Assembly (NCBI GenBank): GCA_002269645.1
Contig: NIVC01001789.1
Coordinates: forward strand, 62,001-126,000
Source: Macrostomum lignano
Taxonomy: Eukaryota
Length of the DNA stretch: 64,000 nucleotides
Direction: 5' to 3'
Below are positions 11,309-40,619 of this stretch, piece after piece. Positions within the stretch are counted from its first letter, which is position 1; every line of letters starts with the position of its first letter. A program made the position numbers and the translations under genes. The notes below the pieces were generated by a model that made no database searches, was not told where the DNA came from, and saw only the letters and a list, made by a program, of their open reading frames with translations.

Positions 11309-11629
11309 CAAGTTGTAGCAATGACTCATTAGCTAATTGACTTGACTTCTGTTCTTTAATTAGTCATCTCTGCTAATTTTTTGCAATGCGATACGATTCT
11401 TAGCCACCCTGTGTTGCGAAGTGATGTGATATTATGATAGAAATTTCACTGCTGTCTTATCTACAAGCTAACTTAACTGTATAGTTTCACAGTAATAGCC
11501 CTCTTATTACACTCTTACCCTTGCGTGGTTTAGACCGGAACTCGCTAGTATCTTTGCGCGCATTTTGTGTTATTGCACATCAGTTTACGCGCGCGCTTAT
11601 TTTGCTGCGTGTATACGTGTATATCATGC

Positions 11630-12839: not shown

Positions 12840-12954
12840 CCTGTTGTCGTTTTCTGTTTAGCTCGCTAAGTTTATGAGTTGGCTGGCAAAGGTTGATTGG
12901 CTCCCTCATACAGTAGCTTTGGCGCCCCCTGCCCCTGTCACCCCCTCAAGTGCA

Positions 12955-13815: not shown

Positions 13816-15787
13816 TACCCAATGTACCCTCAGCATAAATTAGAAAGTCAGAAAAGACAGTAATCTAGGTTTTAATGCAAATATACTAAATGTTCATATT
13901 TCTAAACTAGCCTTTTCTGCACCTTCCCTCAGCCTTTAGTTTCTGTCTCTGTTCCTATGTAAACATGTAAACATGGGTTTGGGCTATTATTGACAGTTGG
14001 CACCAGTGTTTACGCAAGCAGCCAAGTTCAACTGTGGGACCGGAAGTAAACCAGCACTGCAGATCAACATTCCTGTAATATTTGCAAGTTTATTACTTTT
14101 TTCTGGGTAAATAGTATGATATGTTAGATCCTTAAGTTGCGTTATGAATATTATTGCTTAGCTTACTATAATAAATTAAAACCATATTTGTTGGCTAGCT
14201 GTGTTTCAACAAGACGATAACTTGAAATTTAATTTTTATTTATCACCACGATAATTAGTTGTAGTTATGCTCAGTTCAATGTATAGCCATAGAATTTTTA
14301 TTTGTATTATATGCACTTTTCTATATTATATATATATGCCTCCTTTTCTATGCAATACAAAAATACCCTACAGCTGCCGTGTTAACCCCCCAACCCAAAA
14401 TACGGTCGCGAATAGAGAATTCGGGGCAATTTTAAGTGGAAGTGCCCACTTTATACTATGAGTAAATATCGCTGCAACCCAAGGGTTTGTGAGAGAGAGA
14501 GAGAGAGAGAGTTGTGAGCTCAAACTTACCTTACTTCTCTTCAACTTCAGTACCTATCTATGCCAAAAGGCATTTGGCTGCAATATTGACAATTCAATGG
14601 TTTCTGACTTGAGGCTTGACTGCCCGCTTAAGGCTCGCGTATATTCCCTGCTCAATTTTTGCTATGGATATATTGAATTCCACTATCTTATCCGTGGTTT
14701 CCCGGTTGCTTTAGTAATTTATTCTGATTGTTAGGGATCAAATTATAAAACTCTCTAACTCCAACTGGGTTACTAAAAACTTGGCTATTTTAAATACAGG
14801 ATACAAATGTACCCTAATGTACTTTTAGTGCGCCGGTCATTTTAGCACATTTTTGCACAGTCATTAAACAGAATCAGAGTAAAGGTTCAGATCAGAGTCA
14901 GGTCCGCTGTACACGGAATTCTTCGAATTATGAGAAACAACCACATGTTTCAAATGAACCCTAGCATGTGCACATACTCAACAAAATTGAAACACTGAAA
15001 AACTCTAGTCAGTGTCAGTTTAACCTGACTAGGCCTCGCTCCTGACCTGATGATGGGACAGTCAGCTTCGTAAGAGTCGTCTCCCTTCCCCCACTTACTA
15101 GTTAAGACTGCTGCTTTTAATTTTTTAGATTAAAAGTTTATTTTTTTAAACGTTTTTTTCATTAAGGATGTGGTCTAAAATTTTTTGCCAAGAACAACTT
15201 ATTTTATGAAGATTCGACAGTTAAACAATGATAACACTAAACGATGAACACGTTAAATGGGTCTCTGCAGATCTTAAAAAAAAATCCGTTGAAATCATTC
15301 ATTTTCGCGCGCCGCATTTCTGAAGAGTGGCACGCTTCTCTATTGCAGCCAGTCTTCTTTTAATATCAAAAGTGTGACAAATATGATGCGCGGTAGCTTA
15401 ACGACTAAAATCTTGAGAGGTCATTCACAAGTTCACCTCTCTGCCAGATGCTTAGGTCTCTAGGTCGAATGATGATTTTCCATTTTTCTTAGGCCTAAAA
15501 ACTATATGTTGCTCTATCAGTTTCCTCTGCACTATAATATACTTCGGGGCCCTTCACTAAAAAAGTAGTGTGCACGCGCACGCATTTCGGAGTCATAGAC
15601 ATTGATTGATTGACCATTCTGTGTAAGTTCTGTGGTCTAAGCTAGACTGAATAATTTGACTTAAGTCAGCTTCAAATAGGTCTCAATTACTTCATTAAGA
15701 TCTGTAACGATACTTCAACTTAAATTATTTTATAGATATTCAACCTATGTACTAATTCTCTGCAACTTTGCAGCTCTCGCCCAACCC

Positions 15788-17273: not shown

Positions 17274-18355
17274 TTAAAAGTTCAGGTTGCAATTTATAAT
17301 GGGTAAAATTGAAGAAATTTTCAAAGCACTAGAAGTTAGCATGTGATGCTTGTAGCTCAAATGCATAAACCTGTGGACCGTGTAGGAACCATTCGGAATC
17401 TGTTTAGTCTCGAAATTTGTGCGGTTCAGTCGCCTGCAATGGTCCTGTTTCGGCTTAGACAGCTTTTCTGGTGCTAGACAGAGCTTCTTTAGTCTGTCAG
17501 GAATCCATGCCACGTCCCAGATGGGCTGGAAGGCGTCTGCCTCGGCCAGCATGTTGCCGCACCAGTCGGCAGGTCGGTCGCTCTTCTTCAGAGCCGTGTA
17601 CTTCTCGTAGAATGTGTGCAGCATTCTGGGTCCCGTGACGTGCACCGCATCGTTATGAACTCTCTTGGTGTTACTGGCCCAATTCTGCTCGAACCATTGC
17701 GGCCAGTTTGTTAGCACGAAGCTCAGGAAGCTGTGATTCGCTCGGCTCATCATCACCGCATTCGAAATCAGTGCCGGAAGATTGAACGTGAAGACTGCGT
17801 GCTCAGTAGGCTCCTGACTCCACACTGCTGACTCACAGTCGAAGTTCGGAGTCAGCCCCACTCCCTGAAGCTGCGACGGTCTTAGCAGCGGTGTCGGATC
17901 TCGAAGCAGCTCCACATCCGTGTCGATGTACAGACCGCCGACGTGGTGCAGCACAACCAGACGGCCGATGTCCGATCGCTCCAGCCCGTTGACCAGCTTG
18001 CGGTAGCTTTGAACAAGGTACGGATAGTGCTTCGAGATGAGCTCGGAGATCTGCTTGTCGTCCCAGTGCATGAAGTGCCAGGCCTGGATTCGGCTACCGT
18101 TACTCAGCCGTGCCCAGGAGCGCACAATGGGAACCAGCTTGGCTGGCACTCGGCCGTCTTTGCTGGTCCAGTGCACCAGCGCCGGGATGGAGTCCGGGAA
18201 CTGGGAGGGCAGCTCGCTGCAACTTGAATTCTTTAAGGCTGACGAATCGTTTTGCCATTCTGATTGAGTATTTGTAGTTGGCCTTTTATTTAGATAGATT
18301 ATCAGCTGTATCGCAATCGTCAGTATTATTAGAAGCATCAGTTTTCGGCTATTCG
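17274..18355 (-). CDS. GT32 (DXD) glycosyltransferase paralogue 1, exon 2
   Basis: TM segment, IPALVHWTSKD, RSDIGRLVVLHHVGGLYIDTD, ISNAVM, TGP. Acceptor TTTTTAG| at 18356, phase 1. Confidence 0.9.
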
Positions 18356-18763
18356 CTAAAAAGATATAGATGGTAATCACAGGTATAGTTGCAGTCAAGG
18401 GCGTTGCCAGAGAGAGGGGTCTATACGGTCAATTGAAGGCTTGTTCTAGCCACCTTTTACTGCAGCCTTCTTTAACAATACTTCTCGACCTATTACATGT
18501 ATAACCCGACTATTCCACTAATCACAGACACAGCTATACTAACTTGCCATGGAACTTCAGTATTTCTTGATTCTGTACCCAGCGCTAGAGTCGTCGATTG
18601 CGGCGGCTTTCGAGTATCGATAGATCAAATTAACAGATGTTTGTCTTTCGGTACGTAGCACTGTTGTTGGCTAGTCAGTCAGACTAAATAAAATTCACTT
18701 ATGTCCAAAAAATTGTTAAAAGGTATATTTGTGCCCACTTGATCCAAACGAGTACATACTTAC

Positions 18764-19583: not shown

Positions 19584-20647
19584 TTAAATTGCATCGTCAA
19601 TTATTGAATCAAAGAAAAAATCGGAAGCAATCATCGCATTCTTGCTGACAGAGCAAAGGTTTCTGATCAGGCAGTTAAAGTTTCGTCATAAGCAATAAGC
19701 AAGCTATGAAAATATCTTTTCTTAGCCCAGTGGAATCTCTCGTATTAGGCACTTAAAGATTGAATGATTCCTGGACGATCACAAAAGCGGAAATGATATC
19801 TGCACTCGCACTCAGATGTTAATCAATTCGTTCGAAATGTAAACTGCAAGTTTAGATGTCTACTTCTAGGTTTGCCGGTCCCTCAGTTGAGCTTCTCGGT
19901 GAGAAATTTGCGTGCTGTCCATGTTCAACCTTACTTAATACTGTGTACACTCCTTATTGTAAGGCTTCTCCCTGTGACATATTTGCCACGAACGCACGCT
20001 CACTCTATATTGAAATTGCAGTAATGGGTTAAATGGGCAAACGCGTCAGTAACTTGATAGTCTATGGCTGTCTTCCATGCATTTGAATGGGGCAAAGTCT
20101 TCTGTAAAACGAGCGAGGTTTGAGATTGCGAGAAAACCGACTTGGCGCTCAGGCCTGACAATCGATATATTTTATAAGCCGAAGATTGAGGTGGGTTTTG
20201 GGTGTTGCACACGCACGGGCGCAACCGCACGTTGCAAGCAACCACCCCCCATACACAAGCACGTACAAATATGACTACGAACAACATTAGAATATTTATA
20301 GGTGCATAGAATGCTCACACTTCAGTAGAGCTTTTAAATGGGGCAGAGGCGTCAGTGCATAGCTTTAAATGGGGCAGAGTCGTCAGTGCATAGCTTTCTA
20401 ATGGGGCAGACGCGTCAGTTAGATGGTTTTGAAAAGAATCACTACTGCTACTACTATTAGTATAATCGATGAATTGATTGATTGACTGCTTTACCTTTCA
20501 AAATATAAGTATTTACCTAAAATACTAAGTGTGGATTTAATTTTATTGAGCGGCGGCAGCAGCGATGGAGTCGAACTGGACAGAAGCCTGTACATATGAT
20601 TTGCCAGTTATTAATTGGATCACCGCATTGTGTGCTGTCGTAACAGA

Positions 20648-21896
20648 ATGTCTCCTTGGCAAGACGAGTTTACTGACAGCGACGACGAGCGCATCGCAGC
20701 TGCATTAGATGAGTACGAGCGAGAGAGAGCCGCTGCTGCCCAGAATACTGCAGGCCCCGTGTCTTCTGTCCGCAAGCGAGAAGTTTCCGCCGATGATATC
20801 CCACCTGCTGGTCAGCCGGCACAGAAAAGGCGGCGGAACGCCACGACGGACGACGATGAAGCCGACGAGTTCAGTGTGCTGGCGTTTAGTGGTGGAGCAA
20901 CGCGGCAGCCACCACAGCCGACACTGCCGTCACAGTCAACTATGCAGCAACAGTCATCCGCCTCCTACGAGCTTGATGAGATGGACTCGGACGACCGGGC
21001 GGCTCTCAACGCCATGCTCGACTACAAGGCGTCCATGAGCCCTGCCGTGCCGCAGCAAAAACCGCCGCCGGAACCTGCTGCAGCTGTCGCCAACCCTGCC
21101 GAGCTCTCAACGCTGCCGAAACCGCCAGAAGTAGCCGCCGAGCTGCATCGTCAACAGCAGCAGCAACAGCAACAGCAGACTGAATGGCAGCGAACGCAGC
21201 AGCGGGAGCCGTACTCGCAAGCAATCTCACGTTGGTCAATGCAGACCATGCCTCTGGCGAGCCAACGACGGAGCTGGAACCGGCCTGAAGCTCGAGCCGC
21301 CGAGGAGCTTCGACCGGACGAACTGTCCTCGTTAAGCTACAGCCCGTCGTCATCTGCTGCACAGTTAATCCGAATGCTACAGCGCTCGGAGTCTGGCAGT
21401 ACCATCAGCAGCAGCAGCAGCAGCAGCAGCTTCAGCTCCCAACGCGGCAGAGGCGCAGCGGCAAACGGTCGACGCAGAGGCGTCGGCGTCCGGCAAATCG
21501 GCCAGAATCCGCTGCTGCAGGCCGACGCGTTCCGCCAACAGTTCACGGTCACTCGATCAGCTAGCCGTTCGCTACCGCTGTATGGTGCCGCTCCGGTACA
21601 GCGGCTGGTTGAGGACACCGGAGTACTAACTGTGCGGCGCTATCTGCACGTCATCCACATCGATAATTTGCGCTTCATCGGTGAGTAGTAGTAGACTGCT
21701 CTTCTCTCTGCTTAACTTTATACTTATGCATGCAACGCCACAACAATCCCATGTACAGGCCGTGCAAAGGTGTACTTGGGCGAGGCGCTCGAGCCGCACT
21801 GCACTGAGTTGCTATTGGCGTCCAGTCCGGAACTTAACGTCGGCATGGACGAGTCGTGTTACCGCCGGCTAGTGGAGGACCCGCTGGCTGTCGACG

Positions 21897-21934
<38 letters not shown>

Positions 21935-22920
21935 CGCACCTTGTCGGGCTACATTCGGCTTGTGACCAACACCGCCGGCTGGCACGTTTACGAGCTGCTG
22001 CACAGACTGCTGCCGGGATCCGAGGTGGGCCGAGGTTTCGTGCTCAACAACCTCACAACGCTGACAGTCTGCGGTGTGCGTTCCCCTGATACGATAGTCT
22101 CACGCAGCACGACGGATACCCGCTCCTGGTCGGCATTGGCGTATCTCAATGCAGCATGCTGGTGCAGGCAACGCGCTGGGTGCTCTCCTACCGCGGACGG
22201 CCAGCCTGCCAAATAATACCGATGGCTTTCTGCTAGCTCACCAGCAGATGCGGGCGGCACTCCTTAGTCCTTACGATGCTTAAGGATATCCAGCGCCAGC
22301 GTCGTATCCGTCAGGAGCGCCCTCAACGCTGCTCGGCTTGCTCAGAAGCACTGAAGCAGACAATGCGACACCTGAAGCGCCGTCAGTGCCCGCTCCGGGT
22401 GGCCGTGTGCAATGCCCTACTCCGGACATCAGGTGTCGTGTACCTTTACGGGCCATCAGGAGTCGGAAAAACCACGGCCGTTGAGCGCCACTGGGGCCTA
22501 GAGTGAATATTCTGCCCAACAATCAAGCCTTTCGGTGGCAACGACTTCATCTTTGATGGGCTCGACATCAACAGGCACTCTGTCATCTTCATTGACGAAA
22601 TTCGGCCCCAATATTTTGAAGGGAGTAGTGACCTAGAAGCGACGCTACTGCGGCTGTTGAATGGGAACTCGTTTCTAATCAACACGAAGCATCAATCGCA
22701 TGTGTACATCGACTGGGCGCAAAGACTCATAGTAGTCCTGGCCGGGCACGCTTCGCCTGAAGAATACAGTCCGGATTTTCAGCGCCGGCTGCGGAACGAG
22801 AATAATGTCGCTATAGAAATGGATCACGACATTGAAGAATGTCATGGGGAGTGCCAGCCAGTACCTGATGGCACCTACGTTGCTGCCGCCGACGATGAGC
22901 CCGACAATGGCATGTACTGA
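20648..22920 (+). pseudogene. CRESS-DNA-virus-type Rep (SF3 helicase) with acidic/low-complexity N-terminal extension; spliced, decayed
   Basis: Intron 21681-21758 (GTGAGT...TACAG) joins ORFs in frame. Walker A YLYGPSGVGKT (GPSGVGKT 22450-73), FDG, Walker B VIFIDE, LLRLLNG..INTK, motif-C region IVVLAG and Arg finger FQRRL lie in one frame with TGA at 22504. Two apparent frameshifts fall between ~22150 and 22280. HUH nuclease motifs are only weakly recognisable. Confidence 0.78.
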
Positions 22921-23044
22921 TCTTTTGATCGATCGATTGATTAATGTTCTGTTTCTTGACTAATTACTTGGCTAGTACTACTACTATTAGAGACTCTGGC
23001 CTAATAACGGTTCTTTGTTTAATAATCAATTCATTTATTCAGCT

Positions 23045-23095
<51 letters not shown>

Positions 23096-23578
23096 TATTC
23101 CCCCCCCCTTCCCCAATGTTTTTGTCGCATAGTTTAAAGCCTTCTTAAGCCTATTGTTCCTGTCTATTGACTATACAGTTTTCCGTTGACTAAAAACTGC
23201 AGGTATGAAGATTTCTTACTTTGATAATAATAATAATCCACAGCAATGGACGGCGGCAGAAGAAAAAGGACGCTAAAATTCAAATGGCGTGCCAAAGCAG
23301 AAAGCTTAGTCTCAATAATAAAATTGATATACCTATCAAGAAGAAAGAAGAAGAAATTACTAGCTAGCTGCTGTTAGGGATGGCTTCGTTCAACGACTTT
23401 AATCTTCCTTGTCTTTACAGTCCAATACATTAATAGTTTATGGCTTTAACTTTGATTACATTTATAAATAACTGATAAATTAACATAATAAATAATAATA
23501 TATAATATAATAATAACATCGAAAAACTGATCGCGCAATATCAAAAGATGAAAAAATTTATAAACAAGGGCTGGCTAA

Positions 23579-25162
23579 CTAACGCATGTCCATCGTACAG
23601 TTCATACTGGACACCTCGGGCGGAGGAACAGTGACTCCGCGCGCAACGAGGCTCGGCCGGATGTAGGCGTCGTGCAGGCGCAGCAGGGCGTCGCAGAAGA
23701 GGTCGGGCAGCACCATTGTGGCTGGCTGGCCAGTGTGCCCGGCCTTGTGCGGAACTTCGGTCGGCGGCAGCACCAGGTGCGAGTGCCCAACGAGATCTTC
23801 TTCAGTGGCACTGATGCTGGTGTCGCGAAACAGCTGGTCCCGGTCGTCCGCCGCCCTGTGTCGCACTGCACGGTTAAGCAGATGCTGCCGCCGCAGATAA
23901 ATCCACGGCAATAGACTAATTGGCTGTTCCACGCTGCAGAAGAAAACGAACTCCTGCACAATGCGCCGGACAAATACCATCTTGGCGCACAGCTGATTGT
24001 CGTCGTCGCTGCGAGACGAGCTGTTGCTGCTGCTGCTGCTGCTGCTCCAGTCTCCAGTTTGCGGCAGCGCCTCCCAACTGTGCTCAAGCAGCATATTAAA
24101 AAACCGGCCGCGCCGGTTAAAAATGTTGCACACATCGCTACGTTTAATATAGCTGGCCATATAGCCCATCTGCCGACCATGGTGGCCCAGCTTAAGGAGC
24201 TGCTCCTGGAGTGAGCGTACAGCGGCGAACTCACCTTTGGCTTCGTCGATCAGCGAAGACATGCGCACAACTGCAAACTGCCTAGCAGCGAGTGGGTTGT
24301 CGCTCATCAGCTGCTGCTGAGCTCGCCAGCCGGCCTGCTCGGCATCCCCTCTGTCGTCGGCATCGGCGGCGGCGGCGGCACAAAACAACTCTGATTGGCG
24401 CAGTCCGATCGCGTCGAGCACCTGCTCAAGACAGCGATTGCCGCGCAATGTGAGCCAACCCTCCAGGGAGAGCAGGATGGTAACTATCTCCTGGCACTTG
24501 CGGCCCGCCGTTGAAGGCGCCAGCTTAAACTGATTGGTGACCACCTCCAAGCCAAAGACGCCAGCAATGAGGAAAGGCCGCAGCACTAGGTCGGCCAGAG
24601 TGAGCTGCTTGCGCTGCCACAGCCGCTCCAGTGTTGCCTCAACGGAATCGCGGATCTTTCCCCAGCGGCGTTTGTGGCTTTAGTTGGCGGAGATGCGCAT
24701 CTTAGTCGGCGCCGTCCACCAGAGCACGGACAGTCGGTTCAGCGTGGCCTCAATCGACGGCCGGTCGCCGAGCGACACTTTCCTGGCTGGGTGCTCCTTG
24801 CTGAAGTGGCGAAAGACGGAGGCGGAGCTGGCAGACTGACGCTCGCCATGGCGTCGCCGCTGCTGGCACTGGGCGCTGCCGACGAGGTCTCCTCCTCAAC
24901 ATTGTCAGCAGCAGCAGCAGAAGAAGAAGAATGAGGCTTCAGCGCCGCCCACTTTGCCGCTTTCGCCCGGCGCTGCTTTGGTGGCGTGGCAGGTAGTCTG
25001 ACGAGCAGTTGTTGGCCATTGCTGATGTTGGCAGACGAGCTGCTGGGTCGCTCCAGCGCGATATCAGCTGTCTGCAACGACAATGGCGAATGACTGGCCA
25101 ATGGTGGCACGACTGTCGGCGCAGCTGCAACAGCAGCAGCAGCAGCAGCAGTAGAACTGTCT
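23579..25162 (-). pseudogene. Tyrosine-recombinase-like gene, 3' part
   Basis: LAPSTAGRKC (core-binding-like), MGYMASY..IFNRRGRFFNML, VPHKAGHTGQPATMVL..YIRP. In-frame TAA at 24680-82 and a frameshift within ~24790-24895. The C-terminal HxxR/H/Y region is absent. Confidence 0.6.
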
Positions 25163-28100
25163 TCTGGTCTTGTCAATTGGTCTTCCAGTTCAATTGCAAC
25201 GGACTGCAGGCCCGCCGCACGGAGCTAGCCGCAAGACTTGCCCGTAGCCAACCCGTCGCTGTCCTGCTCCAGGAGACCAAGCTCCGCCCAGGAGCGGCCT
25301 TCCACCCGCCACAGGGTTACCACGTGGCGGCCCGGAAAGACGGCGAGGCCAAACACGATCCCGAGCCCGCCGCCACCGCGAATACCACCCAGAGAACTAA
25401 CGATGGAATGCCTGTGGGAGAGGAGGCTCCGACCACCCGCCGCCTCACTCGTCCTAGGTGCCGCCTCCGATGACCCCAGGACAAGACCGGCTGGTGCAAC
25501 GGCTGCAGAAGTGGCCGCTCCGCCTGCTCCAACCGTGACCTCCCGTGGCCTGCCCCATCTGACGACCCTCCGGTCCGCACTCCCCCGGACCCGCCGGAAG
25601 CGCGGAGAGCGTCGGAGAGCGGGCCGGCCAACAAGAAAGCAGGCCGGTGGCACTGTTCGGACTGCAGCAAGGCCATCCGCAGGAACAGCTACAGCGTCCA
25701 GTGTACCAGCTGCAGCGGGTGGCTCCACCTCAAATGCAGCGGCCTCGCTACCGTCAAGCAATACTCAGTGTCATTCGAAGGCCCGTGCTGCAGACACGCG
25801 AACCAGCCCCCAGCTCAGCGTCGGAACGCTCAAGCCCCCCGACCCGCCGGGGGAGCCAGCCGGCCCGACCCGCCGCCCCTTCCTCAACCTGAGGGCGACG
25901 CCGAACCTGCCCCGAACGGCCGAAAGCCAAAAAACTGCAAAAACAAACAGCGCCCGACGGGGAGGGGAGGAGTGCTGATCCTGGTTCGCGATGACGTCCC
26001 CTTCAAGAACCCTAAAGTCAGCAGGGGCGGCCTGCTCGACTACGCGGCGGTGACCATCTGCCCGGCTGCCGTTGGCCAGATCCAATTTTTGGCGGTCTAC
26101 GCTCCGCCCAATAGCAACCAGCGTGCGGAGGACAACTGGCTCCCAGCCTGGTCAGACATACCGGTCGCGCCCCGCACGGTGATTGCCGGCGATTTCAATG
26201 GCCATGGACACTGGGACAGCCACCAACCTGAGGACGAGAGAGGAGACAGCATCGAGGGGTGGGCTAGCGACCGGGGCCTCCACCTTGGCAACCGCGAGGA
26301 TGCCCACACGCGGACCAACCCGGCGACAGGCGGCCTGAGCTGCCCGGATATCACTTGGTGCTCCGGCGACCTTGCCGCCTACGTCAGGACGTCGTGGAGC
26401 ACCTCCGAGGACCTCGGAAGCGACCACCTGCCTATTACCTTCACCCTCTCCAGAGACAAGCAGGCCAAACGTCTCCAACGACAGGCCCAGTGGAGCTACG
26501 CGAAAGCGGACTGGACGTCCTACGCGGCCCGACTGGACGCGGAGGAGGAGGCTTTGCAAGGCATCACCACCGCGCAGAAATCGAGCACGGACGCGGACCA
26601 CCAACAGCTCTGCGACATCATCCTCGTAGCAGCGACCGGCAGTATCCCGCGCGGCGCGCGTCGCAACACCGGCAAACCTTTCTCGACCGAAACGTGTGCC
26701 GCCGCTTGCAACCAGTGCAGCGCCGCGCGGAAAAAGGCCGAGCAGACCAAGACGGTGGAGGACATCTCGGCGTACCACCTCGCCAGACGCCGCGCCGATG
26801 AGACGATCAAGGCCGAGAAGCTCCGCATCTGGGACGAACGAGTCGCGGAGTTGTCCGTCAACAGCGACCTTTTCGGTCTGGCCCGGGCGATGCGGGGCGA
26901 ACCCCCACCGCCTCCCCCCAACGCGGCCCTTGCCATCCCGGCCGATGAGACCAGATGCCGCCGGCAGAGGACTGCGGTCACGGACAAGGAGAAAGCGGAT
27001 GCCTTCTGCACCCTGTACGCGGACGTGTCTCGCGTGGAGCGCAGGAGGTCGGATCGGGGGGTCAACAGGTGCGCCTACGCCGCCATCAAAGCGCGCTGCT
27101 GCGAGCCCGACCACAAACAGCAGATCTGTGGCGCCTTCTCCGCCGTGGAACTTAAGCAGGCCCTGAGGTCGCTGAAATCCAGGAAGAGCCCCGGCCCGGA
27201 CGGAGTGTCCAACGAGATGCTCAAGCGTCTCCCCGAACGGACCGAGCAGCGACTACTTGACCTGATCAACAAGGCCTGGCTCAGCGGACACTGCCCCCAC
27301 CAGTGGCGCAGGGCGATTATCATCCCGATCCCGAAACGCGGCAAACCGGCTGACGACCCGGGTTCGTATCGCCCCGTCGCCCTCACCAGTTGCATTGCCA
27401 AGGTCGCGGAACGGCTGGCGCACCAAAGGCTGAACTTCCTGCTGGAATCCAAGGGCATTCTCAGCAAAGTCCAAGCTGGTTTCCGCAAAGGACGCTCGTG
27501 CGAAGAGCAGATCGCCCGCATCGCCCAGCTTATCTTCGACGGGCTGGAAGAGACTCCCGCGCTTAGAGCGATCCTCTGTTTACTCGACTTCAGCAGAGCC
27601 TACGACAAGGTGTGGCGGAAGTCTCTGATCTGCAAGCTCGAGAAGCTGGGAGTCCCCGCCTGCGTCCTGCGCTGGACCAACAGCTTTCTCAGCGACAGGA
27701 GAGCGCGCGTCCGATTCGGCAATAGCCTCAGCAGAGAGCGCATCTTCCGGGAAGGCCTGCCCCAAGGCTCGGTGATCGCCCCTCTGCTTTGGCTGGTCTA
27801 CGTCAACGACCTGCCAACTGCCATCGCGGAAGCATCGCCGGAAGCCGAGATCAGTCTGTATGCCGACGACTCGGCCATCCTGGCGCGCCATACGGACCTC
27901 GAAAGCTGCGGGCACATCGTGCAACCGGCTCTGGACTCCATGGCCCGCTGGTGCGACCAGAACAAGGTCGTGCTCAGCACTGGGAAGTGCAGTTACAGCA
28001 CTTTCACGCTGTGCCCCAACGAGAACCGCGGCAAGACCAGAGTCGAACTCAGCATCGGCGGCAGCGAGCTTCGTTTCGAGCCCAACCCGGTCTTCCTCGG

Positions 28101-29694
28101 CGTTAAATTCGACGACCACCTTGGGTTCGCGGAGCACGCCAAAGATACCCGTCGCCGCATGGCTGCCAGAAGACGCCCACTGCAGGCCATCGCACACCGG
28201 CAAACGGGTGCGACGCAGAGCATCCTCCGCACCGTTTACGTTGCCAATATCCGAGCTGTGGCGGACTACGGCAGCGGCGTATGGCTTGCGGGAGAGGCAC
28301 CGAGCACCAGGCTCCTAGTCGAGCGCCAGCAGAACGCATGCGCGCGCCTGATTACTGGCTGCATATCCACGGCCCGCACTGAAAATCTCCTTAGCATCGC
28401 CGAGCTGCCGCCCCTCAGCCACGTGGCCATCGAACGCGCGTGCACGCTGAGAGAGCGGATGGCTCGCCTCCCGGACGGATCACCATCGCAGAGCATCGCG
28501 ACAGCGGTCAACACCCCGCGCCTCAAAAACCGCGCCTTCGAAGCCGCCAACCGGCCGAATCAGGCCGAGGGGGTCAATCAGCGCCTCCCGGACAGGGACC
28601 TCGACGCCCGACGTCGATTCCGCGGCTGCTGGAGGCGCGCGGCGCGGGAGCTAGAATGTTGCGAGGTATTGGACGGGACGCCCCGGGCCCACCGACCCCT
28701 CGGTCCCCCACCGTGGGAAGTGGCCGAGGCCGGCCGCGTCCAGTTCGATGTCTCGCTCAGCAAGGTTATCAGCCGCGACATGCCGGCGGCCATGAAAGCC
28801 AACATCGCCAGGCAAATCGTCGGCCCACTGGAGACCTCCGGACACGTCATCTGGACGGACGGATCCGCGGCTGGCGGTTTCACGAACGGAGGCGGTGCGG
28901 CGATCGCCCAGTGGCTACCGGACAACGACGCCCGCCTCGTCGCGGCTGGCGCGCTCTGCAGCAGCTTTACCACAGAACTCTGCGCCATCAGGGAGGCCTT
29001 AGACATCGCCCGCCACCCGGCGCCGCCCACGGGCGCTATAACTATCGCCACGGACAGCCTCAGCGCCATCCAGGCGCTCAGCGCCGGACCCCTGTGCCAG
29101 CAAAACTCAGTTGCCGCGGACTGCTGGAGTAAACTCCTCAACCTGATCGCCATGGACCGCCCTGTTCACTTCGCTTGGGTGCCATCCCACTGCGGGGTTG
29201 CCGGCAACGAGGCGGCCGACCGCGCCGCCGCCAACGCGGCCGGGCTCGACCAACAGGCGGTGCCGATCGAGCTTGACGCGGCAAGGGCAGCCGCTCGTCG
29301 CTCTCGCAGAATGCTGGACGCCAGAGTCCTGCCGCCGAGACTACAGCCGCCGACCAGCCTCCCTAGACGTCTCCAGGTCCTGGTCAACCAGCTCCGGTCC
29401 GGCGCCAGCACCATCAACTTTAGCACCAGACACCGCCTGGGCTTGGAACAGTCCCCCGCCTGCCCCGACTGCGGCGCGGAGGACTCGGCTGAACATCTGC
29501 TCCTCCACTGCCCCCGCGGTGACCACTTCCGGAGAAGAAGCGGCCTGGCCCCGAGCGACCTGATGGGGTCCCCGGAGGCCATCGTCAGACTACTACGCAG
29601 CATGGGGCGGCTCCCCTCGGGGTCCACGCCCCCCTCCAGATCGGCCTAGCCGGAACGGAGGCGCCCCGAAGAAGAAGAAGAAGAAGAAGAAGAA
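25163..29694 (+). mobile_element. Non-LTR retrotransposon, I group (Ingi-like): APE(+PHD)-RT-RNaseH-CCHC, (GAA)n tail
   Basis: 12-bp TSD GTAGAACTGTCT at 25151-62 and 29695-706; (GAA)9 tail. Motifs QFNCNG, LQETK, GDFNGH, SDHLPI, KSPGPDG, YRPVALTS, QAGFR, GLPQGS, YADD, WTDGS, TDSLSA, WVPSHCG..GNEAAD, CPDC..H..HC. Confidence 0.95.
25180..29649 (+). CDS. Single retrotransposon ORF with one in-frame TGA (25471-73) and no ATG at the 5' end
   Basis: Frame 1 is continuous from the APE N-terminus through the PHD finger (CSDC..CTSC..WLHLKC..GPCC) into the 25768 ORF. Confidence 0.85.
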
Positions 29695-30277
29695 GTAGAA
29701 CTGTCTGGCTGCAGCATCTGCGGCTCGTCGTCAGCTTCCTCCTGCTCCTCAACCGTCGGGCAAAGCAGCAGGCGGCGGCGGCGATCGTTTGATGAGAAGC
29801 AGGCAGCGCGTCCCATTGCATCTACAGCGACCATCAACCTATCGATGATCGCTGTATTATCCTCTTCAAAGATGACATCAGCAGTCGCCGCCGCTACCGA
29901 TGCTGATGCATCATCGGGGTCCGCTGCCGGAGGTACTGACTGCGCGGCGGAATCGATTGAACCCTGACAGCGATGGGCCCCAAGCCGACACCGCGCCTCT
30001 CCGCAGACGGGGCAGACGGCGATCACTTCCAATCGATGGCTGGCTTTGGTGCTGCGGCTGCACTTGATCGCCAACCAAACAATGTTTCTCCGCTGCTTGC
30101 CGTCTGCGGCAGACCATTGTGCCTCCGTAGGGCGCATGCGCTCTGGTACATCACTCAGCTGGAAGCTCTGCAGGACCTCTTTCTCATGGCGATTTATATA
30201 GTGGCGCTTCAAGTTCCACCAGGTACAGTCTCGCCACACACAGGGCATTCCGAATTTCGGCGGCATTTCGAAGCCAT
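29695..30277 (-). pseudogene. Tyrosine-recombinase-like gene, 5' part with zinc fingers
   Basis: ATG at 30277 gives MASKCRRNSECPVCGETV, then a frameshift into WNLKRHYINRH (C2H2); second finger CPVCGEARCRLGAHRC. Joins 25150 in frame (PDSST|AAAAAA) once the retrotransposon and one TSD copy are removed. Confidence 0.7.
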
Positions 30278-32629
30278 TTCCTCCTAAGTAAATATATATT
30301 TTCTAATTATTAAGCGCCAATACAATTTTTTCTACACTACTACTACTCAAGTGCCCTCCCCATCAACCTCCATCAAACCTTTAGCACCCAACCCCATATT
30401 TCTTAAGCTGAAGAAGCACCCATCCCCCAGATTTTTTCTTTAATTTTGCAGCAATCGCATGAGTGCATCTGACGAATGCTATGTTTGTATGACTAGGTTC
30501 ATATGCACTTGTCTGGCTGGCTGGCTGGCTGTTTGTCGAGATTTGGGGTTTCTGCCATAAACTATAGCTATCTTTTAACCCAAGCCTACTGGCTATAGCT
30601 GATTCCCTTTGCTTCAGTAGTTGTCCTTTGTTTGGATAGTTCGGCCATAGACTAAAGTACATGGCTGCGGATTCTTGCTCGGGAGGTTAGACCATAAACT
30701 ACTTTTTGGCGGACAGGTTTCTCGCTCGGCTAAAGGCAGAGCTACTCTCTTTCAACTATCTCGCTCCTTTATTCTGTAGTGCTTTAGCTCTGGTCGTAAG
30801 CTTCTGTTCTTCTAACACCACCCTTTGTTTGAGGTAAGTTTTCAGTACTGCTTTGACTATGTTACAGGCCTGTAACTTCTTACAGGCCCCAAGCGTCATT
30901 AGTTGAATTATTTGAGTAGCTATTATCTATCTATCTCTTATATTTGATCGGAGGCCCCTTCCATGCTGCATGCAATTTTCTTATTTTCTTGGCTTGCAAG
31001 AACTCCTGCCGAGATTGTCTCCATTTTTATTCAATACCGTCCGTTATATCCTTGCACGTCGATTTAGTCTTACAAGCTAGAGGGGAGCAGCTCAGCGGTA
31101 AACAGCTCTGACTCCAGCACCACGAATCATTCATTTGGGGCTTGTGCAATGACTCAAACATTCAGTCATCACCCCGACGCTGTCGGCACCTTAAAGGAGA
31201 CGAAAACATGACTAAGGACACCCAAAAGAGATTATTTTTTAGCCATTTTAGTAACATTTATTACTTGATCTTTAGTCCACACAGAAATTCGATACTTTTT
31301 TTGTTATTTTTTCTCTTGGCAAAAATTCGGTTCAATTTACAGTTCAGTTAACTAATTGCGTCATCACGTCGAGTGATGATAGACTGTTTGTGAGCCTTAG
31401 CTGAGAATGACCAGGAGTTAAAGTTTGCCCATTATTGATGATTGATCAGTGACATCAAAGACATTCGCAAAAGGATGTCCATAGTCGCGTGGTGTAATCT
31501 GTTGAAGGTGCCAATGGCGTCTGAGTGATGACAGAATGCTTGAGAGACTAGCTGAGAACGTCCAGCAGTCGAGTTTTGCCCACTGTCGAGGCTTGATCAG
31601 CGAAACTAGAGAAATCCGCATCAGGGTGTCCATAGTCACCTGGTGCCACCTGTTGAAGGTCCAGAAGCTCCGCCTGGGTGAAGGCTAGTGACCAAAGAAG
31701 TCAGTGCTGATGCAGACACATGTGATCGACGTGCTGATGAAGTTTGGAGGCTTGGCAAGGCTGCACTGAGGCGCAGTGCTGATTGGCGCACAGGGGTGTA
31801 CTGAATACACTAGCGCTTATGGAAAAAATCCGACTTTTTGGCAAAATCGTAGAATATCTCAACGGTCCAGAGGGCTGGCGACTTTATTCTTGTTTGAAAA
31901 GGTGCGCAACAGAAAGTTAGCCCGTGTTTTTTTGTGTGTCTGCGTTGCTCCGTTCCGGCGCAGCCAAGAAAATTGTCAGGGGGGGGATTTTTCCCGTCTG
32001 GTAGTTTTGTGCACCTTACGACAGGATTATTACGAAGTACCATGCACCGGCGGTTTTTTTAACGATCCAACGATCCAGCGAACCCTTCAATCGAACCGCA
32101 TCGCATACCAGTGCCCATACGAGAGGTGGAGGCCCTAATGTATGGCACCACCCCAGCAGAAGTGCATTCAGTAGGTGAACAATACTCAACCGTACATCGA
32201 GGTGTCTAGAGCTGGTCGACACCTTTGGCTGAATGACAACAAACTGACATTCAGAGAACCAACTGACCCCCTCTCTCTCTCTCTCTCTCTTCATTACAAC
32301 GACTGTGCGTCGGTGTGTGCATTAAACTGTATGTGTTCACTGCTCACTGTTCGTTCATTCACTGCTCACTGTTCGTTCATTCACTGCTCACTGTTCGTTC
32401 ATTCACTGCTAAATGGATTCCAAATAAACAGTGTTGTCGGATTCAGCGCGCAGGAATGTCGTTCCCGCACTCGTTCGCGTACCGGAATGCAACTGTCTAT
32501 GGTAAAAACGCCATTGAAATCAAAGAGAAAATCAGTGCAGGAATGATGTGCGATTCTTGCACTATAAAGGAAACGGAACATTTATTATATAGTATATTTA
32601 GTTCATTTAAATTTACTTTGGTTCACTTT

Positions 32630-32868: not shown

Positions 32869-33701
32869 GGGGGCTCCGCCCCCACACCCCGGCAAGGGGA
32901 CTGCGTCCCCTTGACCCCTGCTTCCTACCACTCTTACTGTGTGCAAGAATGAATCCAACAACACTGCAATTTCCACACTCTGACTCGTGCGTCTCGTGCG
33001 CACTCGTGCTTTTTGCCATAGACGAACTCGTTAGAGTGCGGAAATATACCATTCTTCTTGGGCAAACTAAAATCGAATGCAGCTTTCGGAGATTAGTCCA
33101 TGGCTCAAGCTGGGGATCATAATAGGACATGGTTAGGCATCAGTTCCCTTGGGAAAAATAGATTGCTCTGTTTTGTCAAACTAGATAGCAAAAAATTGGT
33201 ATAATATTCGCGCACTGTGAAGAGACGTTAAGCCTGAGGGCAAATATTTGCAATCCTGCTGCGCCGGAAATTTGTTCACGCAGCTCTGCAGAATACTCTA
33301 AATAACTGGGGGTAGGACTGCATTTGTCAGAGTAAAATTTGTTTGCCAATTCTACATTCTCGTGAGCGCAACGAGTGTGCGGTATGCTATTGGTCGTCTA
33401 ATTAGACTATAGCTCGTATACGTAGCAATTAGTGTTATATGCTTGTTAGGAACTAAGAGAGAAATTCATTTTATTGGTAATTCTTAGAAGCAGCTAAACC
33501 GGCTCTCTAATATGTACATGGCAGTGAGTGTTACAGTTAGCACAGCGTCAAGTGTAAATTTGCCAAAATGCAGTCTCGTTATAGGCGTGAAACCGTGTCG
33601 TGCGTTTCGTGTCCGCCCGAGCTGAGTTTGCACCGAATTAATGAACTTTTGGCCATAAACATTCTCAGTAGGCGGGCAATCTCGTTTCAACTGGCTGAAT
33701 A

Positions 33702-34580
33702 TACCTTTTAACATTTTTTGGACATAAGTGAAGTTTATTTAGTCTTTGGCCAGCTCAGTCCTAGAAAAGTGAGTTTGATTTAGTCAGCACTCGGGTTTAC
33801 CATAGACTATAGTAAAGAAATAAAATCGATTTAGTCAAGTTCCGCTAAATTCTGAAAAGTTACGAAAGTGAAACTTTTCAAAAGTTTTTCAAAAGTGTAC
33901 ACTTTTGAAACTTTTGAAACTTTTGTTTTCAAAAGTGTAACAAAAGTGTAACTTTTGTAACTTACAAAAGTTACAAAGTGAATTTTATTTAGTCGTTAGC
34001 TTTGATAAGATACATGCACGAGTAGTTAAACAAGAACAATACAAACGAACACAGACACAACAAATTATTGTTACGACGCTTCACTCTTCAATTCAATCAA
34101 CGATGTCTTCCCATGGCAATGTAGCGGGGTATGTACCGAAGGCTCTCACGATGCCAGGCTTCGCAGTGAGGCTGTGTGACAGCTGCCATACTGGCCTCCA
34201 GTTCACGCTCAAGAATGCGGGCGCGGTGTTCTTGTAGAGTTCTGGTGTTCTGGCAGACTGACGTTGGATGTTTAGCTGTCTCCCTGGTTGCTGCCAATCG
34301 GCATTTCCAATAAAGGCGTCGATGGGTCTTCGCCGGTCCTGCTCAGAGATGGTGACTCTGCGAATGCCTGCAGCTGCCGCCATGAAAATAAAATTCACTT
34401 TGACTAAAATCTTGTCATGGAAGGGTTTAAATACGTGGCACTTAACTAAATCGAGTTCATTTCTTTACTATAGTTTATGGTAAACCCCGAATGCTGACTA
34501 AACCAAACTCTTTTTTCGAGGACTGAGCTGGCCAAAGACTAAATAAACTTCACTTATGTCCAAAAAACTGTTAAAAGGTA
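33702..34580 (-). mobile_element. Non-autonomous TA-target DNA transposon (Tc1/IS630-like) with ~130-bp TIRs
   Basis: TACCTTTTAACA..GGACATAAGTGAAGTTTATTTAGTCTTTGGCCAGCTCAGTCC.. is mirrored at the right end, with TA flanks. Internal remnant RRVTISEQDRRRPIDAF..DWQQ..RQLNIQRQSAR resembles a transposase N-terminal HTH. A solo TIR piece lies at ~18680-18728. Confidence 0.75.
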
Positions 34581-35183
34581 TATTACATGTATATTACAAT
34601 GTGACAAATCTATGTATGGCGCCACAGCTATGCGGTGCCCAAGCAGGTTACTGACAAGCAAGCCTTTTCGTTCAGGTCATTTCGTTCGAAAGGCAAGAAA
34701 GACACTTCGTCTTTTTCGCGCGTTAGATTTTTTATTGTTTCTTATTTGTCTTTGCGTAATTTGTCTAAATTATTTAATTCCAATTTTTTAAACTATAAAA
34801 TACGCAGTAAGAGAGACTAGTAGGTTTTATTTAAGCTTAGATAGCGTTAGGCCGTACGAATAGCTGAGCATTTGCCATGCGACTCACATTTACACAGATC
34901 TGTATAAATCTATAATATTTAGCATTTAGTTACCATGAGGAGTTGTACCATGACTACGTGGCTATCGGGCGGGTTGATATTCGATTATTGCCATAGACGA
35001 TTTCATTTTGGCCCGAAAAGCATGGCCGATAATGGATTATTTCCTTTATTCTTTCTCTATAGTTGAACTGTATAGTTTCTCACTAAATCATTCTGTCTAT
35101 GGTTGAAATGTGGTGGCTTCGCCCCCACACCACCATGCCCATATTCATCAATGCAGCTCATACGCTCGTACAACTCAGTCACA

Positions 35184-36775
35184 TAGTCTATGGCACAATT
35201 ACAGTATTACCCAGGCTTTAAGGGCGATAATGGGAAAGCCAGAGGGTGCCGAAAATCCCCCAAATTTGAATGGTATGGTAGCCCCGGACGAGTGTCTATT
35301 GTCGCGCGAGTTTTTATGTATCCCCCACTTGCCCCGGGCGAACGTCTATGGTCTCAGTGTAAATTTCATTTATTTGCATCGGTGCAAATAAACGGTTTAT
35401 TTCAGTCGCCCAAAGACAATATTAAAACGCTGCTTCTAACTGCTCACTTGGCTACATAGAGAGAATTGTCTGAAACAGCAAATTTCACTTTTATTTTCTT
35501 CAGCAAATGACCTTCAATATATAGGCTTTGTACGCACCTCCAGAATGAAACTTTTAAGTAGGTAATTTAGATCAATCTTCGACAGTTCGCTGATCTCCTT
35601 CAAACCATTAGCGAGGATCCACCTCCAGTGCACCAGGCCGCTTTCTTCGTTTCGTGCCATTCAATATTCAATATTTCTCAGTCCTGCTACAGTTGTATTT
35701 AACGATTATAAACTAACAAAACCAACAGCAACAGGAAGTTCAGCATAGTAAGAAATAGAAGCCTTTTCTAAGCACTCCCTCAAAGACGATTTCAACAGTG
35801 TTAGTGTTACCGTTGATTTTAATCCTCATTTTCTTTGCAGGATTAGCACTCACTACGTTGCTTTGTTCCATAGATTCAACAGAGCGTTCAGGCTCGGTTT
35901 CAATAGACGGACTTGATGACTGACCACAAGAAGACCAGAAGTGCACTTTAACATGGTCTTGTACGTTAAACTGAATATAGCGCTCAATAGCTGTCGAAGA
36001 GTGTCCTGTAACACGAGCGACGTCCTCTCTAGCGAAGCCAGCACGGTGTAGAGTACTTGCGCAAGTCTTGCGTAGAGACTGATTAGTGTACCTTCCAGTC
36101 ACTCCAGTTAGGGGAGCCGTTAATTCACGAACAATACCGTCCAAGCTGTGCCGGCCGACGGGTGCAACTACCAGCAGCAGGATTCGTTGCAGCGGATTAT
36201 TTACTTTCAAAATATCTTAACACTACACCTTTTCACGTTCAATTTTGATCAAAGTCCAGTTCTAAAAAAACTAGCGGAAATTCAATTCAGACAATTCAGA
36301 CTCGGGCCCAGTCTAACCCCAGCTCAAAACATTCTAACCGAAGTAAGGTTTAGCCATAGACAAAATTATCCTCAGTCTGAATCACAGAATCAAAGCATGA
36401 AATGAAGATTTCAAGAAATTGGGCTACTTTTCCACAGACGAAATTCACTCACTTTCTTATTTAAATTTACATAGACATCTTCTTTTCTTACCATGGACAA
36501 AGCAGACACTTTTTCTGATCAGGCTGTATTTGCACTGACGAATTTCACTTGCTTAGACGAATTCGAAGTCACTTTCTCTACAAATTTACCATAGACACTC
36601 ATTCTCTTCCCCTTGAGCGCTATATAGTTTTGCAGACGCTGACAAATTTGAACTCACTTTTGACGAATCGCGAAGTTGAAAAGGTATATTATGTAGGAGA
36701 CGAAAAAATGGATGAACTGCTGCAGTTAGATTCACAACACTTTAGCCACTCAGTCACAGCTTGCGCCATAGACTA
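35184..36775 (-). mobile_element. Crypton-like tyrosine-recombinase element remnant
   Basis: YR C-terminal remnant inside; flanked by TAGTCTATGGC (35184-94) and GCCATAGACTA (36765-75). Confidence 0.65.
35740..36210 (-). pseudogene. Crypton (DUF3504-like) tyrosine recombinase C-terminal fragment
   Basis: PVGRHSL..VREL..TGVTGRYTNQSLRKTCASTLHRAG..EDVARVTGHSSTAIERY matches the Crypton TNHSLR..GH..Y pattern, with His to Gln. Confidence 0.82.
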
Positions 36776-37534: not shown

Positions 37535-38767
37535 CTACAGCTTGCATTTGAGAATTGGCAAAATTGACGATATGTTCAAACTGCAGGCCAGATCCATGCT
37601 GTCCGAGTAGCTCAGGTGCAGGAACCTGTGCACCGTGTACGAGCTCTTCGGAATGCGCTTCGTCTGGAATTTTTGACGAATCAGACGCTTGCAGTGGCGA
37701 CGTTGAACTTTTAGAAGCTTGTCTGGCCTCTGGCAGAACTTGATCAGCTTCTTGGGAACAAATATCTCGTCCCAGATGGGCTGGAATGCGTCACCCCTGG
37801 CCAGCATGTTGCCGCACCAGTCGGCTGGCTGGCTGCTCGGCTTCAACGAGGCATATCGTTTGTAGAATGCCTGCAGCATTATGGGCCCGGTCACCATTAC
37901 CGCGTCGAAGTGGGTCCTGTTCACTCTCCTGGCCCAATTCCGCTCGAACCATTTCGGCCAGTTCTTCAGCACGAAGCTCAGGAAGCTGTGATTCGCTCGG
38001 CTCATCATCACAGCATTCGATATCATCGAGGTTAGGTTGAAAAGGAACACTGGATGCTCTATTGGCTCCTGACTCCACACTGCTGACTCACAGTCGAAGT
38101 TCGGAGTCAGCCCCGCTCCCTGAAGCTGCGATGGTCTCAGCAGCGGTGTCGGATCTCGAAGCAGCTCCACATCCGTGTCGACGTACAGACCGCCGACGTG
38201 GTGCAGCACGACCAGACGGCCGATGTCCGATCGCTCCAGCCCGTTGACCAGCTTGCGGTAGCTTTGAACAAGGTACGGATAGTGCTTCGAGATGAGCTCG
38301 GAGATCTGCTTGTCGTCCCAATGCATGAAGTACCAGCGGTCAGCGAGGAATCCGTCTGTATTCGAGCTGTTTCTGTCAGCGCTGCTGCTATCGTTGAGTC
38401 TGACTTCGAGCAGTCGCCTCCATGAGCGCACAATGGGAATCAGCTTGGCTGGCACTCGACCGTCTTTGCTGGTCCAGTGCACCAGCGGCGGGATGGAGTC
38501 CGGGAAGCGGTAGGGCAGCTCGCCACAAGTTCGACTGAAGGGTAAAGGCGTTAGCCGTGTAATGTTTATCGTTGAGTTGTCCGCGGAATCCGTGTCATCG
38601 AGACATTCGATGGGCTTAAAGAACTTTTCCGCCATTAAATTCGTAAGAAGAAGCAGATTGAATGCAGATAGCAGCGTCAGAATGAGCAACATGCTTCGGC
38701 TTTTGCCGGGCCTTGTCCAACGGATAAGCATTCTAGTATTTGAAACAGCGATGTAATCTGTAAACAT
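37535..38767 (-). CDS. GT32 glycosyltransferase paralogue 2
   Basis: Same motifs as paralogue 1 (YVDTD). A phase-1 acceptor TTTACAG| lies at ~38760, but in-frame ATGs precede the TM segment and no first exon was located. Confidence 0.9.
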   Translation of the reverse strand: MFTDYIAVSNTRMLIRWTRPGKSRSMLLILTLLSAFNLLLLTNLMAEKFFKPIECLDDTDSADNSTINITRLTPLPFSRTCGELPYRFPDSIPPLVHWTSKDGRVPAKLIPIVRSWRRLLEVRLNDSSSADRNSSNTDGFLADRWYFMHWDDKQISELISKHYPYLVQSYRKLVNGLERSDIGRLVVLHHVGGLYVDTDVELLRDPTPLLRPSQLQGAGLTPNFDCESAVWSQEPIEHPVFLFNLTSMISNAVMMSRANHSFLSFVLKNWPKWFERNWARRVNRTHFDAVMVTGPIMLQAFYKRYASLKPSSQPADWCGNMLARGDAFQPIWDEIFVPKKLIKFCQRPDKLLKVQRRHCKRLIRQKFQTKRIPKSSYTVHRFLHLSYSDSMDLACSLNISSILPILKCKL

Positions 38768-39830: not shown

Positions 39831-39944
39831 GTGAGATGGCGCTTTTTGTTGCTTCATGTTTGTAAGCAAGTTTGTATTTAATGAAATATTGCTGAGTTGC
39901 TTTGGTCTGACTGGTAGGCTTTTAGCACCAGGGGCGTCAGCACC

Positions 39945-40490: not shown

Positions 40491-40619
40491 TTTCAGAGTT
40501 ACTATAACGATATTTGTTTCTACAACGGAGGTTTTCTGGTGAAAAATGCTACATGCATTTTCTAGCGAATCAATCTACAATAGTTGAATCTTAAGTGATT
40601 AAATAAGCAGCATAAATTT

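Follow-up and report, generated by a model that had tools for sequence, protein, structure and literature searches.

Organization of the locus

The DNA analyzed here is a 64,000-nucleotide stretch of the flatworm Macrostomum lignano (contig NIVC01001789.1 of assembly GCA_002269645.1, positions 62,001 to 126,000; hereafter the window), in which a gene related to viral replication initiator (Rep) proteins stands next to a second gene of convergent orientation. The Rep-derived gene lies on the plus strand at 20615..22920 and was delimited from its open reading frames (ORFs) and frames, from homology and from a family of 13 proteins. Its neighbor lies on the minus strand at 23579..30266 and was delimited from ORFs and coding-type GC; translation may in fact begin slightly farther upstream, by a few codons and in a different frame. 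Each gene is treated as a single part although both are broken. A separate element, a non-long-terminal-repeat (non-LTR) retrotransposon with an intact ORF2 of 1293 amino acids (25768..29649, plus strand), is inserted inside the minus-strand gene. Without the 4,544-base insertion, the block of 10,597 bases shrinks to ~6.05 kb, in which two convergent genes are found but no capsid-like ORF, as the original prediction had described it.

The helicase-bearing frame on the plus strand matched only one database protein closely, at 96% identity, the M. lignano hypothetical protein BOX15_Mlig013629g1 (P0001), which is encoded on NIVC01001938.1 of the same assembly (GCA_002269645.1). The 20.8 kb around the P0001 gene, referred to here as L001, was collinear with window positions 12221-32903 at 97-98% identity, and within the two genes the identity was 98.5-99.3%. 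Collinearity and near-identity indicate that L001 is the same locus, on the other haplotype or in a duplicated block; about 180 Mb of the M. lignano assembly lies in duplicated blocks at an identity of at least 95% (PMC5730564). The block with the Rep-like and minus-strand genes occupies both copies of the locus, and host genes encoding EME1/MUS81-C and DXD glycosyltransferases lie on both sides.

The Rep-derived gene and its helicase

The product of the plus-strand gene begins with a low-complexity acidic and polyglutamine extension, which is followed by a Rep-like N-terminal domain and then by a superfamily 3 (SF3) helicase. Long acidic, polyglutamine and serine-rich tracts make up the N-terminus. 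The Rep-like, nuclease-derived domain was placed at 21560..22260 (plus strand, approximate bounds) by MAFFT alignments A6 and A9. The SF3 helicase domain occupies 22384..22866 (plus strand), where Walker A (22450-22473), Walker B and motif C could be read in the sequence. In Pfam, the gene gave a P-loop and a sub-threshold match to PF00910 (E-value 1.5e-3), and the profiles Viral_Rep, Gemini_AL1 and Parvo_NS1 matched neither the pieces of the window nor P0001 and its relatives.

Structural analysis was carried out on the allelic protein P0001. The AlphaFold (AF2) model built on a 12-sequence alignment reached a predicted local distance difference test score (pLDDT) of 76 and was usable, and a single-sequence model of the helicase (pLDDT 44) was of no use. 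A Foldseek search of the PDB with the usable model returned Rep40 of adeno-associated virus 2 (AAV2; 7e-7) and E1 of a papillomavirus (BPV; 4e-6), with parvovirus B19 NS1 and the JC virus helicase among the further matches. In the Foldseek comparison with the ATPase domain of porcine circovirus 2 (PCV2) Rep, the template modelling (TM) score was 0.63 on the target, with a root-mean-square deviation of 3.6 Å. The top match in BFVD was an "ATP-dependent helicase Rep" of an uncultured virus (2.5e-8), and parvovirus NS1 was also among the leading entries. With its Walker A, Walker B and C motifs, these fold matches and a relative on a virus-like contig (see below), the plus-strand gene is of viral ancestry and encodes an SF3 helicase of the Rep/NS1 type, and the earlier assignment of a Rep-type gene with an SF3 helicase was thereby borne out.

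Inside the N-terminal domain, a 78-nucleotide GT-AG segment in phase 1 was read at 21681..21758 on the plus strand, at a place where the ORF of the related metagenome contig L003 (JGI 3300040801) is continuous. Excision of 21681-21758 rebuilds exactly the stretch that is continuous in the intact L003 ORF. This segment is probably a spliceosomal intron, as judged from its boundaries and from the comparison with L003.

Relatives of the Rep-like protein and the nicking residues

An exhaustive phmmer search with P0001 through 1.84 billion representative proteins gave 13 matches. One of them, P0003, is a second, diverged M. lignano protein whose gene model continues into sequence resembling a G-protein-coupled receptor (GPCR); an exact look-up of P0003 returned no record. 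The other relatives were fragments on short metagenomic or read-assembly contigs with a GC content of 32-53%. Contig L003 carries an uninterrupted ORF of 444 amino acids that is 53% identical to the M. lignano protein over the helicase part, and the homology extends through the N-terminal domain. We also observed that the Rep relatives without nicking residues (L003, L004/L005, L006, L007, L008 and L009) all stand on low-coverage contigs of 32-53% GC from unrelated samples.

The remaining relative to be considered, P0013, is distant yet significantly similar, with an E-value of 7.8e-4 in phmmer and 2e-10 in tblastn. It is encoded on L002, a contig of 2347 bp, and shows H-L-H and Y-V-T-K motifs in the expected order. 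Downstream of P0013, L002 carries a 303-amino-acid ORF with an arginine-rich N-terminus, which is a trait of capsid proteins in small single-stranded DNA (ssDNA) viruses. From this gene content, L002 is probably the genome of a small Rep-encoding virus. Scans of IMG/VR with P0013 and with a two-sequence Rep alignment returned no relative, and the metagenome scan with the two-sequence alignment returned nothing.

The residues of the N-terminal domain were called from alignments A6 and A9, which were concordant at ~20% identity. In P0013, the H-L-H column contained H-L-H and the tyrosine column Y. The corresponding residues were T-L-S and S in M. lignano (the latter in the L001 allele), T-V-A and R in L003, and Q-L-K and D in L006, while P0006 and L004 each retained one histidine and had W and E, respectively, in the tyrosine column. 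In the M. lignano domain, the alignments thus show other residues in place of the HUH histidines and of the tyrosine and lysine of motif III, and H-L-H together with Y-V-T-K was retained in the virus-like P0013 only. Conservation of a nearby aspartate and of the pattern around it marks the N-terminal domain itself as homologous. The clade apart from P0013 appears to lack the DNA-nicking residues with which rolling-circle replication starts. With neither HUH histidines nor a catalytic tyrosine in the alignments, the idea that the block is amplified by its Rep protein was left unsupported.

The minus-strand gene

The product of the minus-strand gene has Cys/His finger motifs at the N-terminus and a globular region at the C-terminus, and it also contains low-complexity spacers. 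The N-terminal part of the L001 allele shows a C-x2-C...H-x4-H finger and, after it, a second motif, C-x2-C...H-x2-C. The GC content at the three codon positions was 0.64/0.44/0.72, a coding-type pattern which indicates that this is, or was, a real coding gene. It had been proposed to encode a zinc-finger protein resembling a tyrosine recombinase (YR). The finger motifs were found as described, and the resemblance to a recombinase was not recovered by profiles, PDB sequences, phage genomes or HMMs. No Pfam family was found at E<=10, Phage_integrase and DUF3504 included, PHROGs gave nothing relevant, and PDB sequences gave no match. A six-frame tblastn search of 50,697 phage genomes at E<=10 contained no match to the gene. 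A word-indexed search of 5.8 billion proteins with both alleles, in which distant relatives can be missed, returned no homologue, and no locus with the minus-strand gene was found in the scan of metagenome contigs.

Direct comparison with recombinases gave the same result. The comparator set consisted of six natural recombinases (XerC, XerD, FimB, FimE, lambda Int and P1 Cre), a small and purely prokaryotic profile that makes a weak test, and against it hhalign assigned the minus-strand protein a probability of 0.7%, with an aligned stretch that differed from the candidate picked by eye. An unfiltered hmmsearch (--max) with the YR profile gave -1.5 bits, which was matched by 79 of 500 shuffles. 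Read by eye, the order Arg, Lys, Arg-His, His, Tyr in the C-terminus of the L001 allele resembles that of a recombinase active site. None of the alignment methods put these residues there, and the window allele lacks the region of the last three candidate tetrad residues. Neither sequence, profile, phage search nor shuffle-controlled HMM gave support to a recombinase identity of the gene, which is unlikely rather than refuted, since eukaryotic YRs are very divergent (PMC3212892). We regard the gene as a separate protein-coding gene, or a former one, that is tied to the Rep gene by adjacency only.

Decay, insertion and signs of residence

Both genes are pseudogenes in the window copy, and the decay stated by the original prediction could be counted in frameshifts, stops, an insertion and a deletion. 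In the plus-strand gene, the window allele contains three frameshifts and one premature stop, and the L001 allele contains one frameshift, between the N-terminal domain and the helicase, and no stop; four frame-changing indels separate the two alleles. The premature stop in the helicase of the window allele (22484-22510) lies within three C-to-T or G-to-A differences from L001 in five codons. In the minus-strand gene, the window allele contains two frameshifts, one of them common to L001, one in-frame stop that is also common, the retrotransposon insertion and a deletion at the 3' end, by which roughly the last 200 codons, still present in the L001 allele, were removed. The L001 allele has the common frameshift and stop and, compared with the window, an additional 0.6-kb segment at the 5' end. 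The common frameshift and stop could lie inside an unrecognized intron.

The composition of the two genes is that of their surroundings. Their GC content at third codon positions (GC3) was 0.61-0.75, compared with 0.61-0.69 in the neighboring host genes, so that what looks like a "GC-rich island" is merely coding density. The GenBank annotation of the assembly is derived from transcripts, from which those overlapping annotated repeats were removed (PMC5730564). As the L001 gene model passed this filter, the L001 allele is transcribed and was not recognized as a repeat.

The nested retrotransposon belongs to the later history of the locus. Its ORF2 matched RVT_1 (1.3e-31), Exo_endo_phos_2 (7e-15) and RNase_H (1e-12) in Pfam and had a GC3 of 0.79, and an exact look-up of the ORF returned no record. 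A (GAA)n tail closes the insertion, a direct repeat of 12-13 bp stands on either side of it, and L001, which lacks the insertion, represents the empty site. The reported non-LTR insertion with flanking target-site duplication was thus verified by its apurinic-type endonuclease, reverse transcriptase and RNase H domains, its direct repeat and its empty site. The empty site in L001 shows that the element arrived after the two locus copies had split, and the absence from the other copy indicates that this retrotransposon family was recently active. L001 in turn has ~3.3 kb of additional DNA between the two genes (L001 11203-14692), which contains an ORF with Tc1/mariner-type helix-turn-helix domains (11389-11724) and probably represents a transposon that inserted in L001 alone.

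Short repeats, proposed termini and mobility

The ends of the block had been defined by two inverted 11-bp motifs. The 11-mer TAGTCTATGGC was indeed found exactly at 20058..20068 on the plus strand and at 30644..30654 on the minus strand, but it did not behave as the terminus of an element. With up to one mismatch, TAGTCTATGGC occurred at 15 sites in the window, four of them exact, compared with 0.88 expected (an excess of ~17-fold). The sites include a cluster at 33015-36775, and their flanks are unrelated apart from one inverted duplicate pair. The complementarity of the two putative termini ends at 11 bp, and the bases outside the two copies differ, so there is no target-site duplication. 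As a word common in the window, with no extended inverted repeat and no duplicated target, TAGTCTATGGC was rejected as a terminus. It is an over-represented local word, perhaps with a regulatory role or perhaps forming the core of a short repeat that is dispersed. The left copy lies upstream of the plus-strand gene and the right copy upstream of the minus-strand gene, each in the orientation of its gene, an arrangement that fits a regulatory word as well as anything.

A second pair of repeats brackets the Rep-derived gene. The 13-mer CTACTACTATTAG occurs in exact copies at 20448..20460 and 22978..22990, both on the plus strand and 2530 bp apart. These are the only two exact copies in the window, against 0.04 expected, and none of 100 shuffles contained two. 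The pair is retained in L001. The 9-mer core of CTACTACTATTAG was found in L001 at 8291-8299, at 10829-10837 and, on the minus strand past the stop of the minus-strand gene, at 14907-14915, as well as in non-coding sequence of L002 (2195-2203). This core loosely resembles the origin nonanucleotide of viruses with circular Rep-encoding ssDNA (CRESS) genomes. The CTACTACTATTAG flanks showed no extended homology, their alignment scoring 28, a value that the top few percent of shuffles also reached (95th percentile 23, maximum 35), and the hairpins around the copies folded no better than shuffles (z from -0.01 to 0.4). A stem-loop origin with a canonical nonanucleotide beside the rep gene was not found in the CTACTACTATTAG regions.

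Upstream of the Rep-derived gene, a 31-bp tandem repeat of 2.9 units occupies 20329..20419, with degenerate single units at 20030-20050 and 20082-20112; L001 has fewer units. The 13-mer pair and the tandem repeats could be remnants of a replicon origin, ordinary words of an untranslated region or promoter, or chance. Several unrelated satellites of the window (12941-13794, 56074-57046 and 58040-60064) share an AAATGG-type core similar to the 31-bp repeat.

The proposed mobility of the two genes as a pair could not be sustained, as there is one known locus, which is occupied in both copies. P0003, the only other M. lignano paralogue, adjoins a different, GPCR-like downstream sequence and shows no trace of the partner, and similarity to the minus-strand gene was absent from the eight other loci with Rep homologues (L002-L009), where the missing partner is weak evidence because all are short contigs of 1.3-3.4 kb. 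The protein databases contributed one close protein and one diverged paralogue, which lacks the partner. A second copy with both genes was found neither in the protein databases nor in the scans of metagenome and viral contigs, and the window contains no paralogous empty site. Absence of YR similarity and absence of shared ends had been named in the original prediction as grounds for abandoning it; no YR similarity (as far as sequence can tell) and no shared ends were found.

Genomic surroundings

The block is embedded in ordinary, repeat-rich host DNA with more than 10 satellite arrays. Four paralogous ORFs for DXD sugar-binding glycosyltransferases, all on the minus strand (17274-18398, 37535-38767, 54110-55417 and 61617-62678), form a dispersed tandem family interleaved with satellites. 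A BEL/Pao LTR retrotransposon on the minus strand (1295-7647) contains two long ORFs, one encoding a DUF1759 gag and a protease and the other Peptidase_A17, reverse transcriptase, integrase and DUF5641. A mariner-type fragment is also present among the repeats of the window. At 39856-40542, an ORF of 228 amino acids is made up of a 15-bp tandem repeat with 38 near-perfect units.

Origin of the locus

On balance, we favor the reading that the locus holds an old endogenous viral Rep-derived gene beside an orphan finger-containing gene. It has what defines an endogenous viral element (EVE): a virus-type gene lies between host genes, in both copies of the locus, and carries signs of residence. According to this reading, the Rep gene of a lineage of small Rep-encoding DNA viruses would have entered the germline of an ancestor of Macrostomum and would then have been inherited as ordinary chromosomal DNA. 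The small clade to which it belongs keeps the SF3 motifs, and the HUH histidines and the nicking tyrosine appear to have been lost or never present. The alignments suggest a protein able to bind and hydrolyze NTP, and perhaps to bind DNA, yet unable to initiate rolling-circle replication. During its residence, the gene gained a probable intron, low-complexity expansions and a host-like codon composition, and after the divergence of the two locus copies the non-LTR retrotransposon entered the minus-strand gene.

Several points weigh against this interpretation. The tie to a bona fide virus depends on a single contig, L002; neither the N-terminal domain of P0013 nor the second ORF of L002 matched a curated Pfam family or a PDB sequence, and a terminal overlap was sought in L002 and the other small contigs and not found. 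The calls of the catalytic residues hang on the ~20%-identity alignments. Some of the frameshifts, being single-base indels, could be assembly errors. The copy number in M. lignano comes from database and contig scans, and insertion rather than ancient host ancestry would follow from the viral relatives alone, with no orthologous empty site. The 13-mer direct repeat and the tandem repeats upstream of the gene are left unexplained, and could be remnants of a replicon.

Among the alternatives, the Rep-like gene may be an exapted, functional host family with a helicase or DNA-binding use, of which the window would contain a degenerate duplicate. Relatives with intact long ORFs, no nuclease residues and a GC content spread over 32-53% suggest several hosts and selection on the ORF, the gene model of the L001 allele is based on transcripts, and duplicated blocks at 95% identity or more are numerous in M. 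lignano assemblies (PMC5730564). On the other hand, the window allele has four breaks and the L001 allele is frameshifted between the N-terminal domain and the helicase, unless this is an error of assembly, and we hold this alternative to be rather unlikely. Less probable still is that both genes stem from one larger foreign piece, a virus or plasmid-like replicon integrated once by illegitimate recombination and then decayed, so that the minus-strand gene would be viral without being a recombinase. The two genes are adjacent and alike in composition and low-complexity style, E1 of papillomavirus, which is of the nuclease-dead type, ranked among the best fold matches, and the minus-strand gene was an orphan as far as a word-indexed search of 5.8 billion proteins can reveal. 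Yet orphan genes are common in flatworm genomes; no capsid, polymerase or packaging ATPase gene was found in or near the block, IMG/VR gave no relative, and the composition equals that of the host genes.

The two remaining readings make the two genes parts of one element. The block may be what is left of an animal element or of a small replicon that had integrated, in which a Rep was combined with a highly divergent recombinase-like protein; the 13-mers and tandem repeats would then be leftovers of an origin or of attachment sites, and the nuclease-dead clade a hitherto undescribed lineage between rolling-circle Rep viruses and replicons of the E1/large-T type. We consider this very improbable, and the loose ends presented by the 13-mers and tandem repeats are the main reason for keeping it in consideration at all. 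The least probable reading is the one originally proposed, in which the ~6-kb block is an integrative, self-replicating element whose minus-strand gene, as a YR, excises and integrates a circle that Rep amplifies. It draws on the adjacent and convergent position of the genes in one gene-dense block, on the Rep-like nature of the plus-strand gene, on the residue order read by eye in the C-terminus of the L001 allele as resembling an active site, and on the 9-mer common to the flanks of both L001 genes and the virus-like L002. Against these stand the missing recombinase signal in Pfam, PHROGs, PDB sequences, phage tblastn, hhalign and the HMM-versus-shuffle comparison, the absence by alignment of the Rep nuclease residues, an 11-mer that is a common word without target duplication, the lack of a second copy and the host-like codon composition.

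Comparison with known systems

Read as an endogenous Rep-derived gene, the locus resembles the CRESS-type EVEs derived from rep (PMC3198968; PMC6372831), in which likewise an SF3 Rep-type gene lies between host genes, rep only and partly decayed, with at least one copy transcribed. The M. lignano gene differs from them in that none of the profiles Viral_Rep, Gemini_AL1 and Parvo_NS1 matches it, that by alignment the tyrosine and the histidines of HUH are missing, and that it possesses the intron and the low-complexity extension; its nearest virus-like relative here, P0013 on L002, is itself unclassified. With the endogenous densovirus NS1 genes of Platyhelminthes (PMC13055364; PMC6880638), it has in common the flatworm host, an SF3 helicase of ssDNA-virus type and chromosomal integration, and Macrostomum is not mentioned in PMC13055364. 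Those papers treat parvovirus NS1, whereas the M. lignano protein has no Parvo_NS1 match and its relatives form a separate small family.

In papillomavirus E1 and polyomavirus large T, the SF3 helicase as a rule follows a domain that is derived from the Rep nuclease and lacks the nicking residues. With its own apparently nuclease-dead domain and SF3 helicase, the M. lignano protein finds in E1 and large T its nearest functional analogy. The relation does not extend in sequence beyond the helicase fold; E1 and large T have no comparable low-complexity N-terminus, and the rest of the gene complement of such viruses is absent from the locus.

The defining feature of Cryptons, which occur in multiple copies, is a YR with an R-H-R-Y tetrad (PMC3212892). 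The likeness to Cryptons is confined to what had been proposed, since the candidate would share with them one large ORF, the lack of long terminal repeats and boundaries that are difficult to draw; the locus shows no YR similarity and no second copy was found here, and a Rep gene is absent from Cryptons. The other analogy originally drawn is with prokaryotic integrative elements, where a rolling-circle Rep is joined by an integrase. The locus differs from these in a Rep without nicking residues, a partner that is not recognizably an integrase, and the look of resident eukaryotic genes, with the intron and the host codon composition.

Significance

The locus falls short of evidence for a eukaryotic mobile element of a new class, and Rep-derived EVEs are already known. 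If the preferred reading is true, a free-living flatworm would join the hosts of Rep-derived viral fossils. It would also mean that a small, unclassified clade of Rep-like proteins, represented in several organisms and by one virus-like relative, has kept the helicase and not the nicking residues. Such clades bear on the origin of nuclease-dead initiators from rolling-circle Reps and on the reuse of viral helicases by their hosts.

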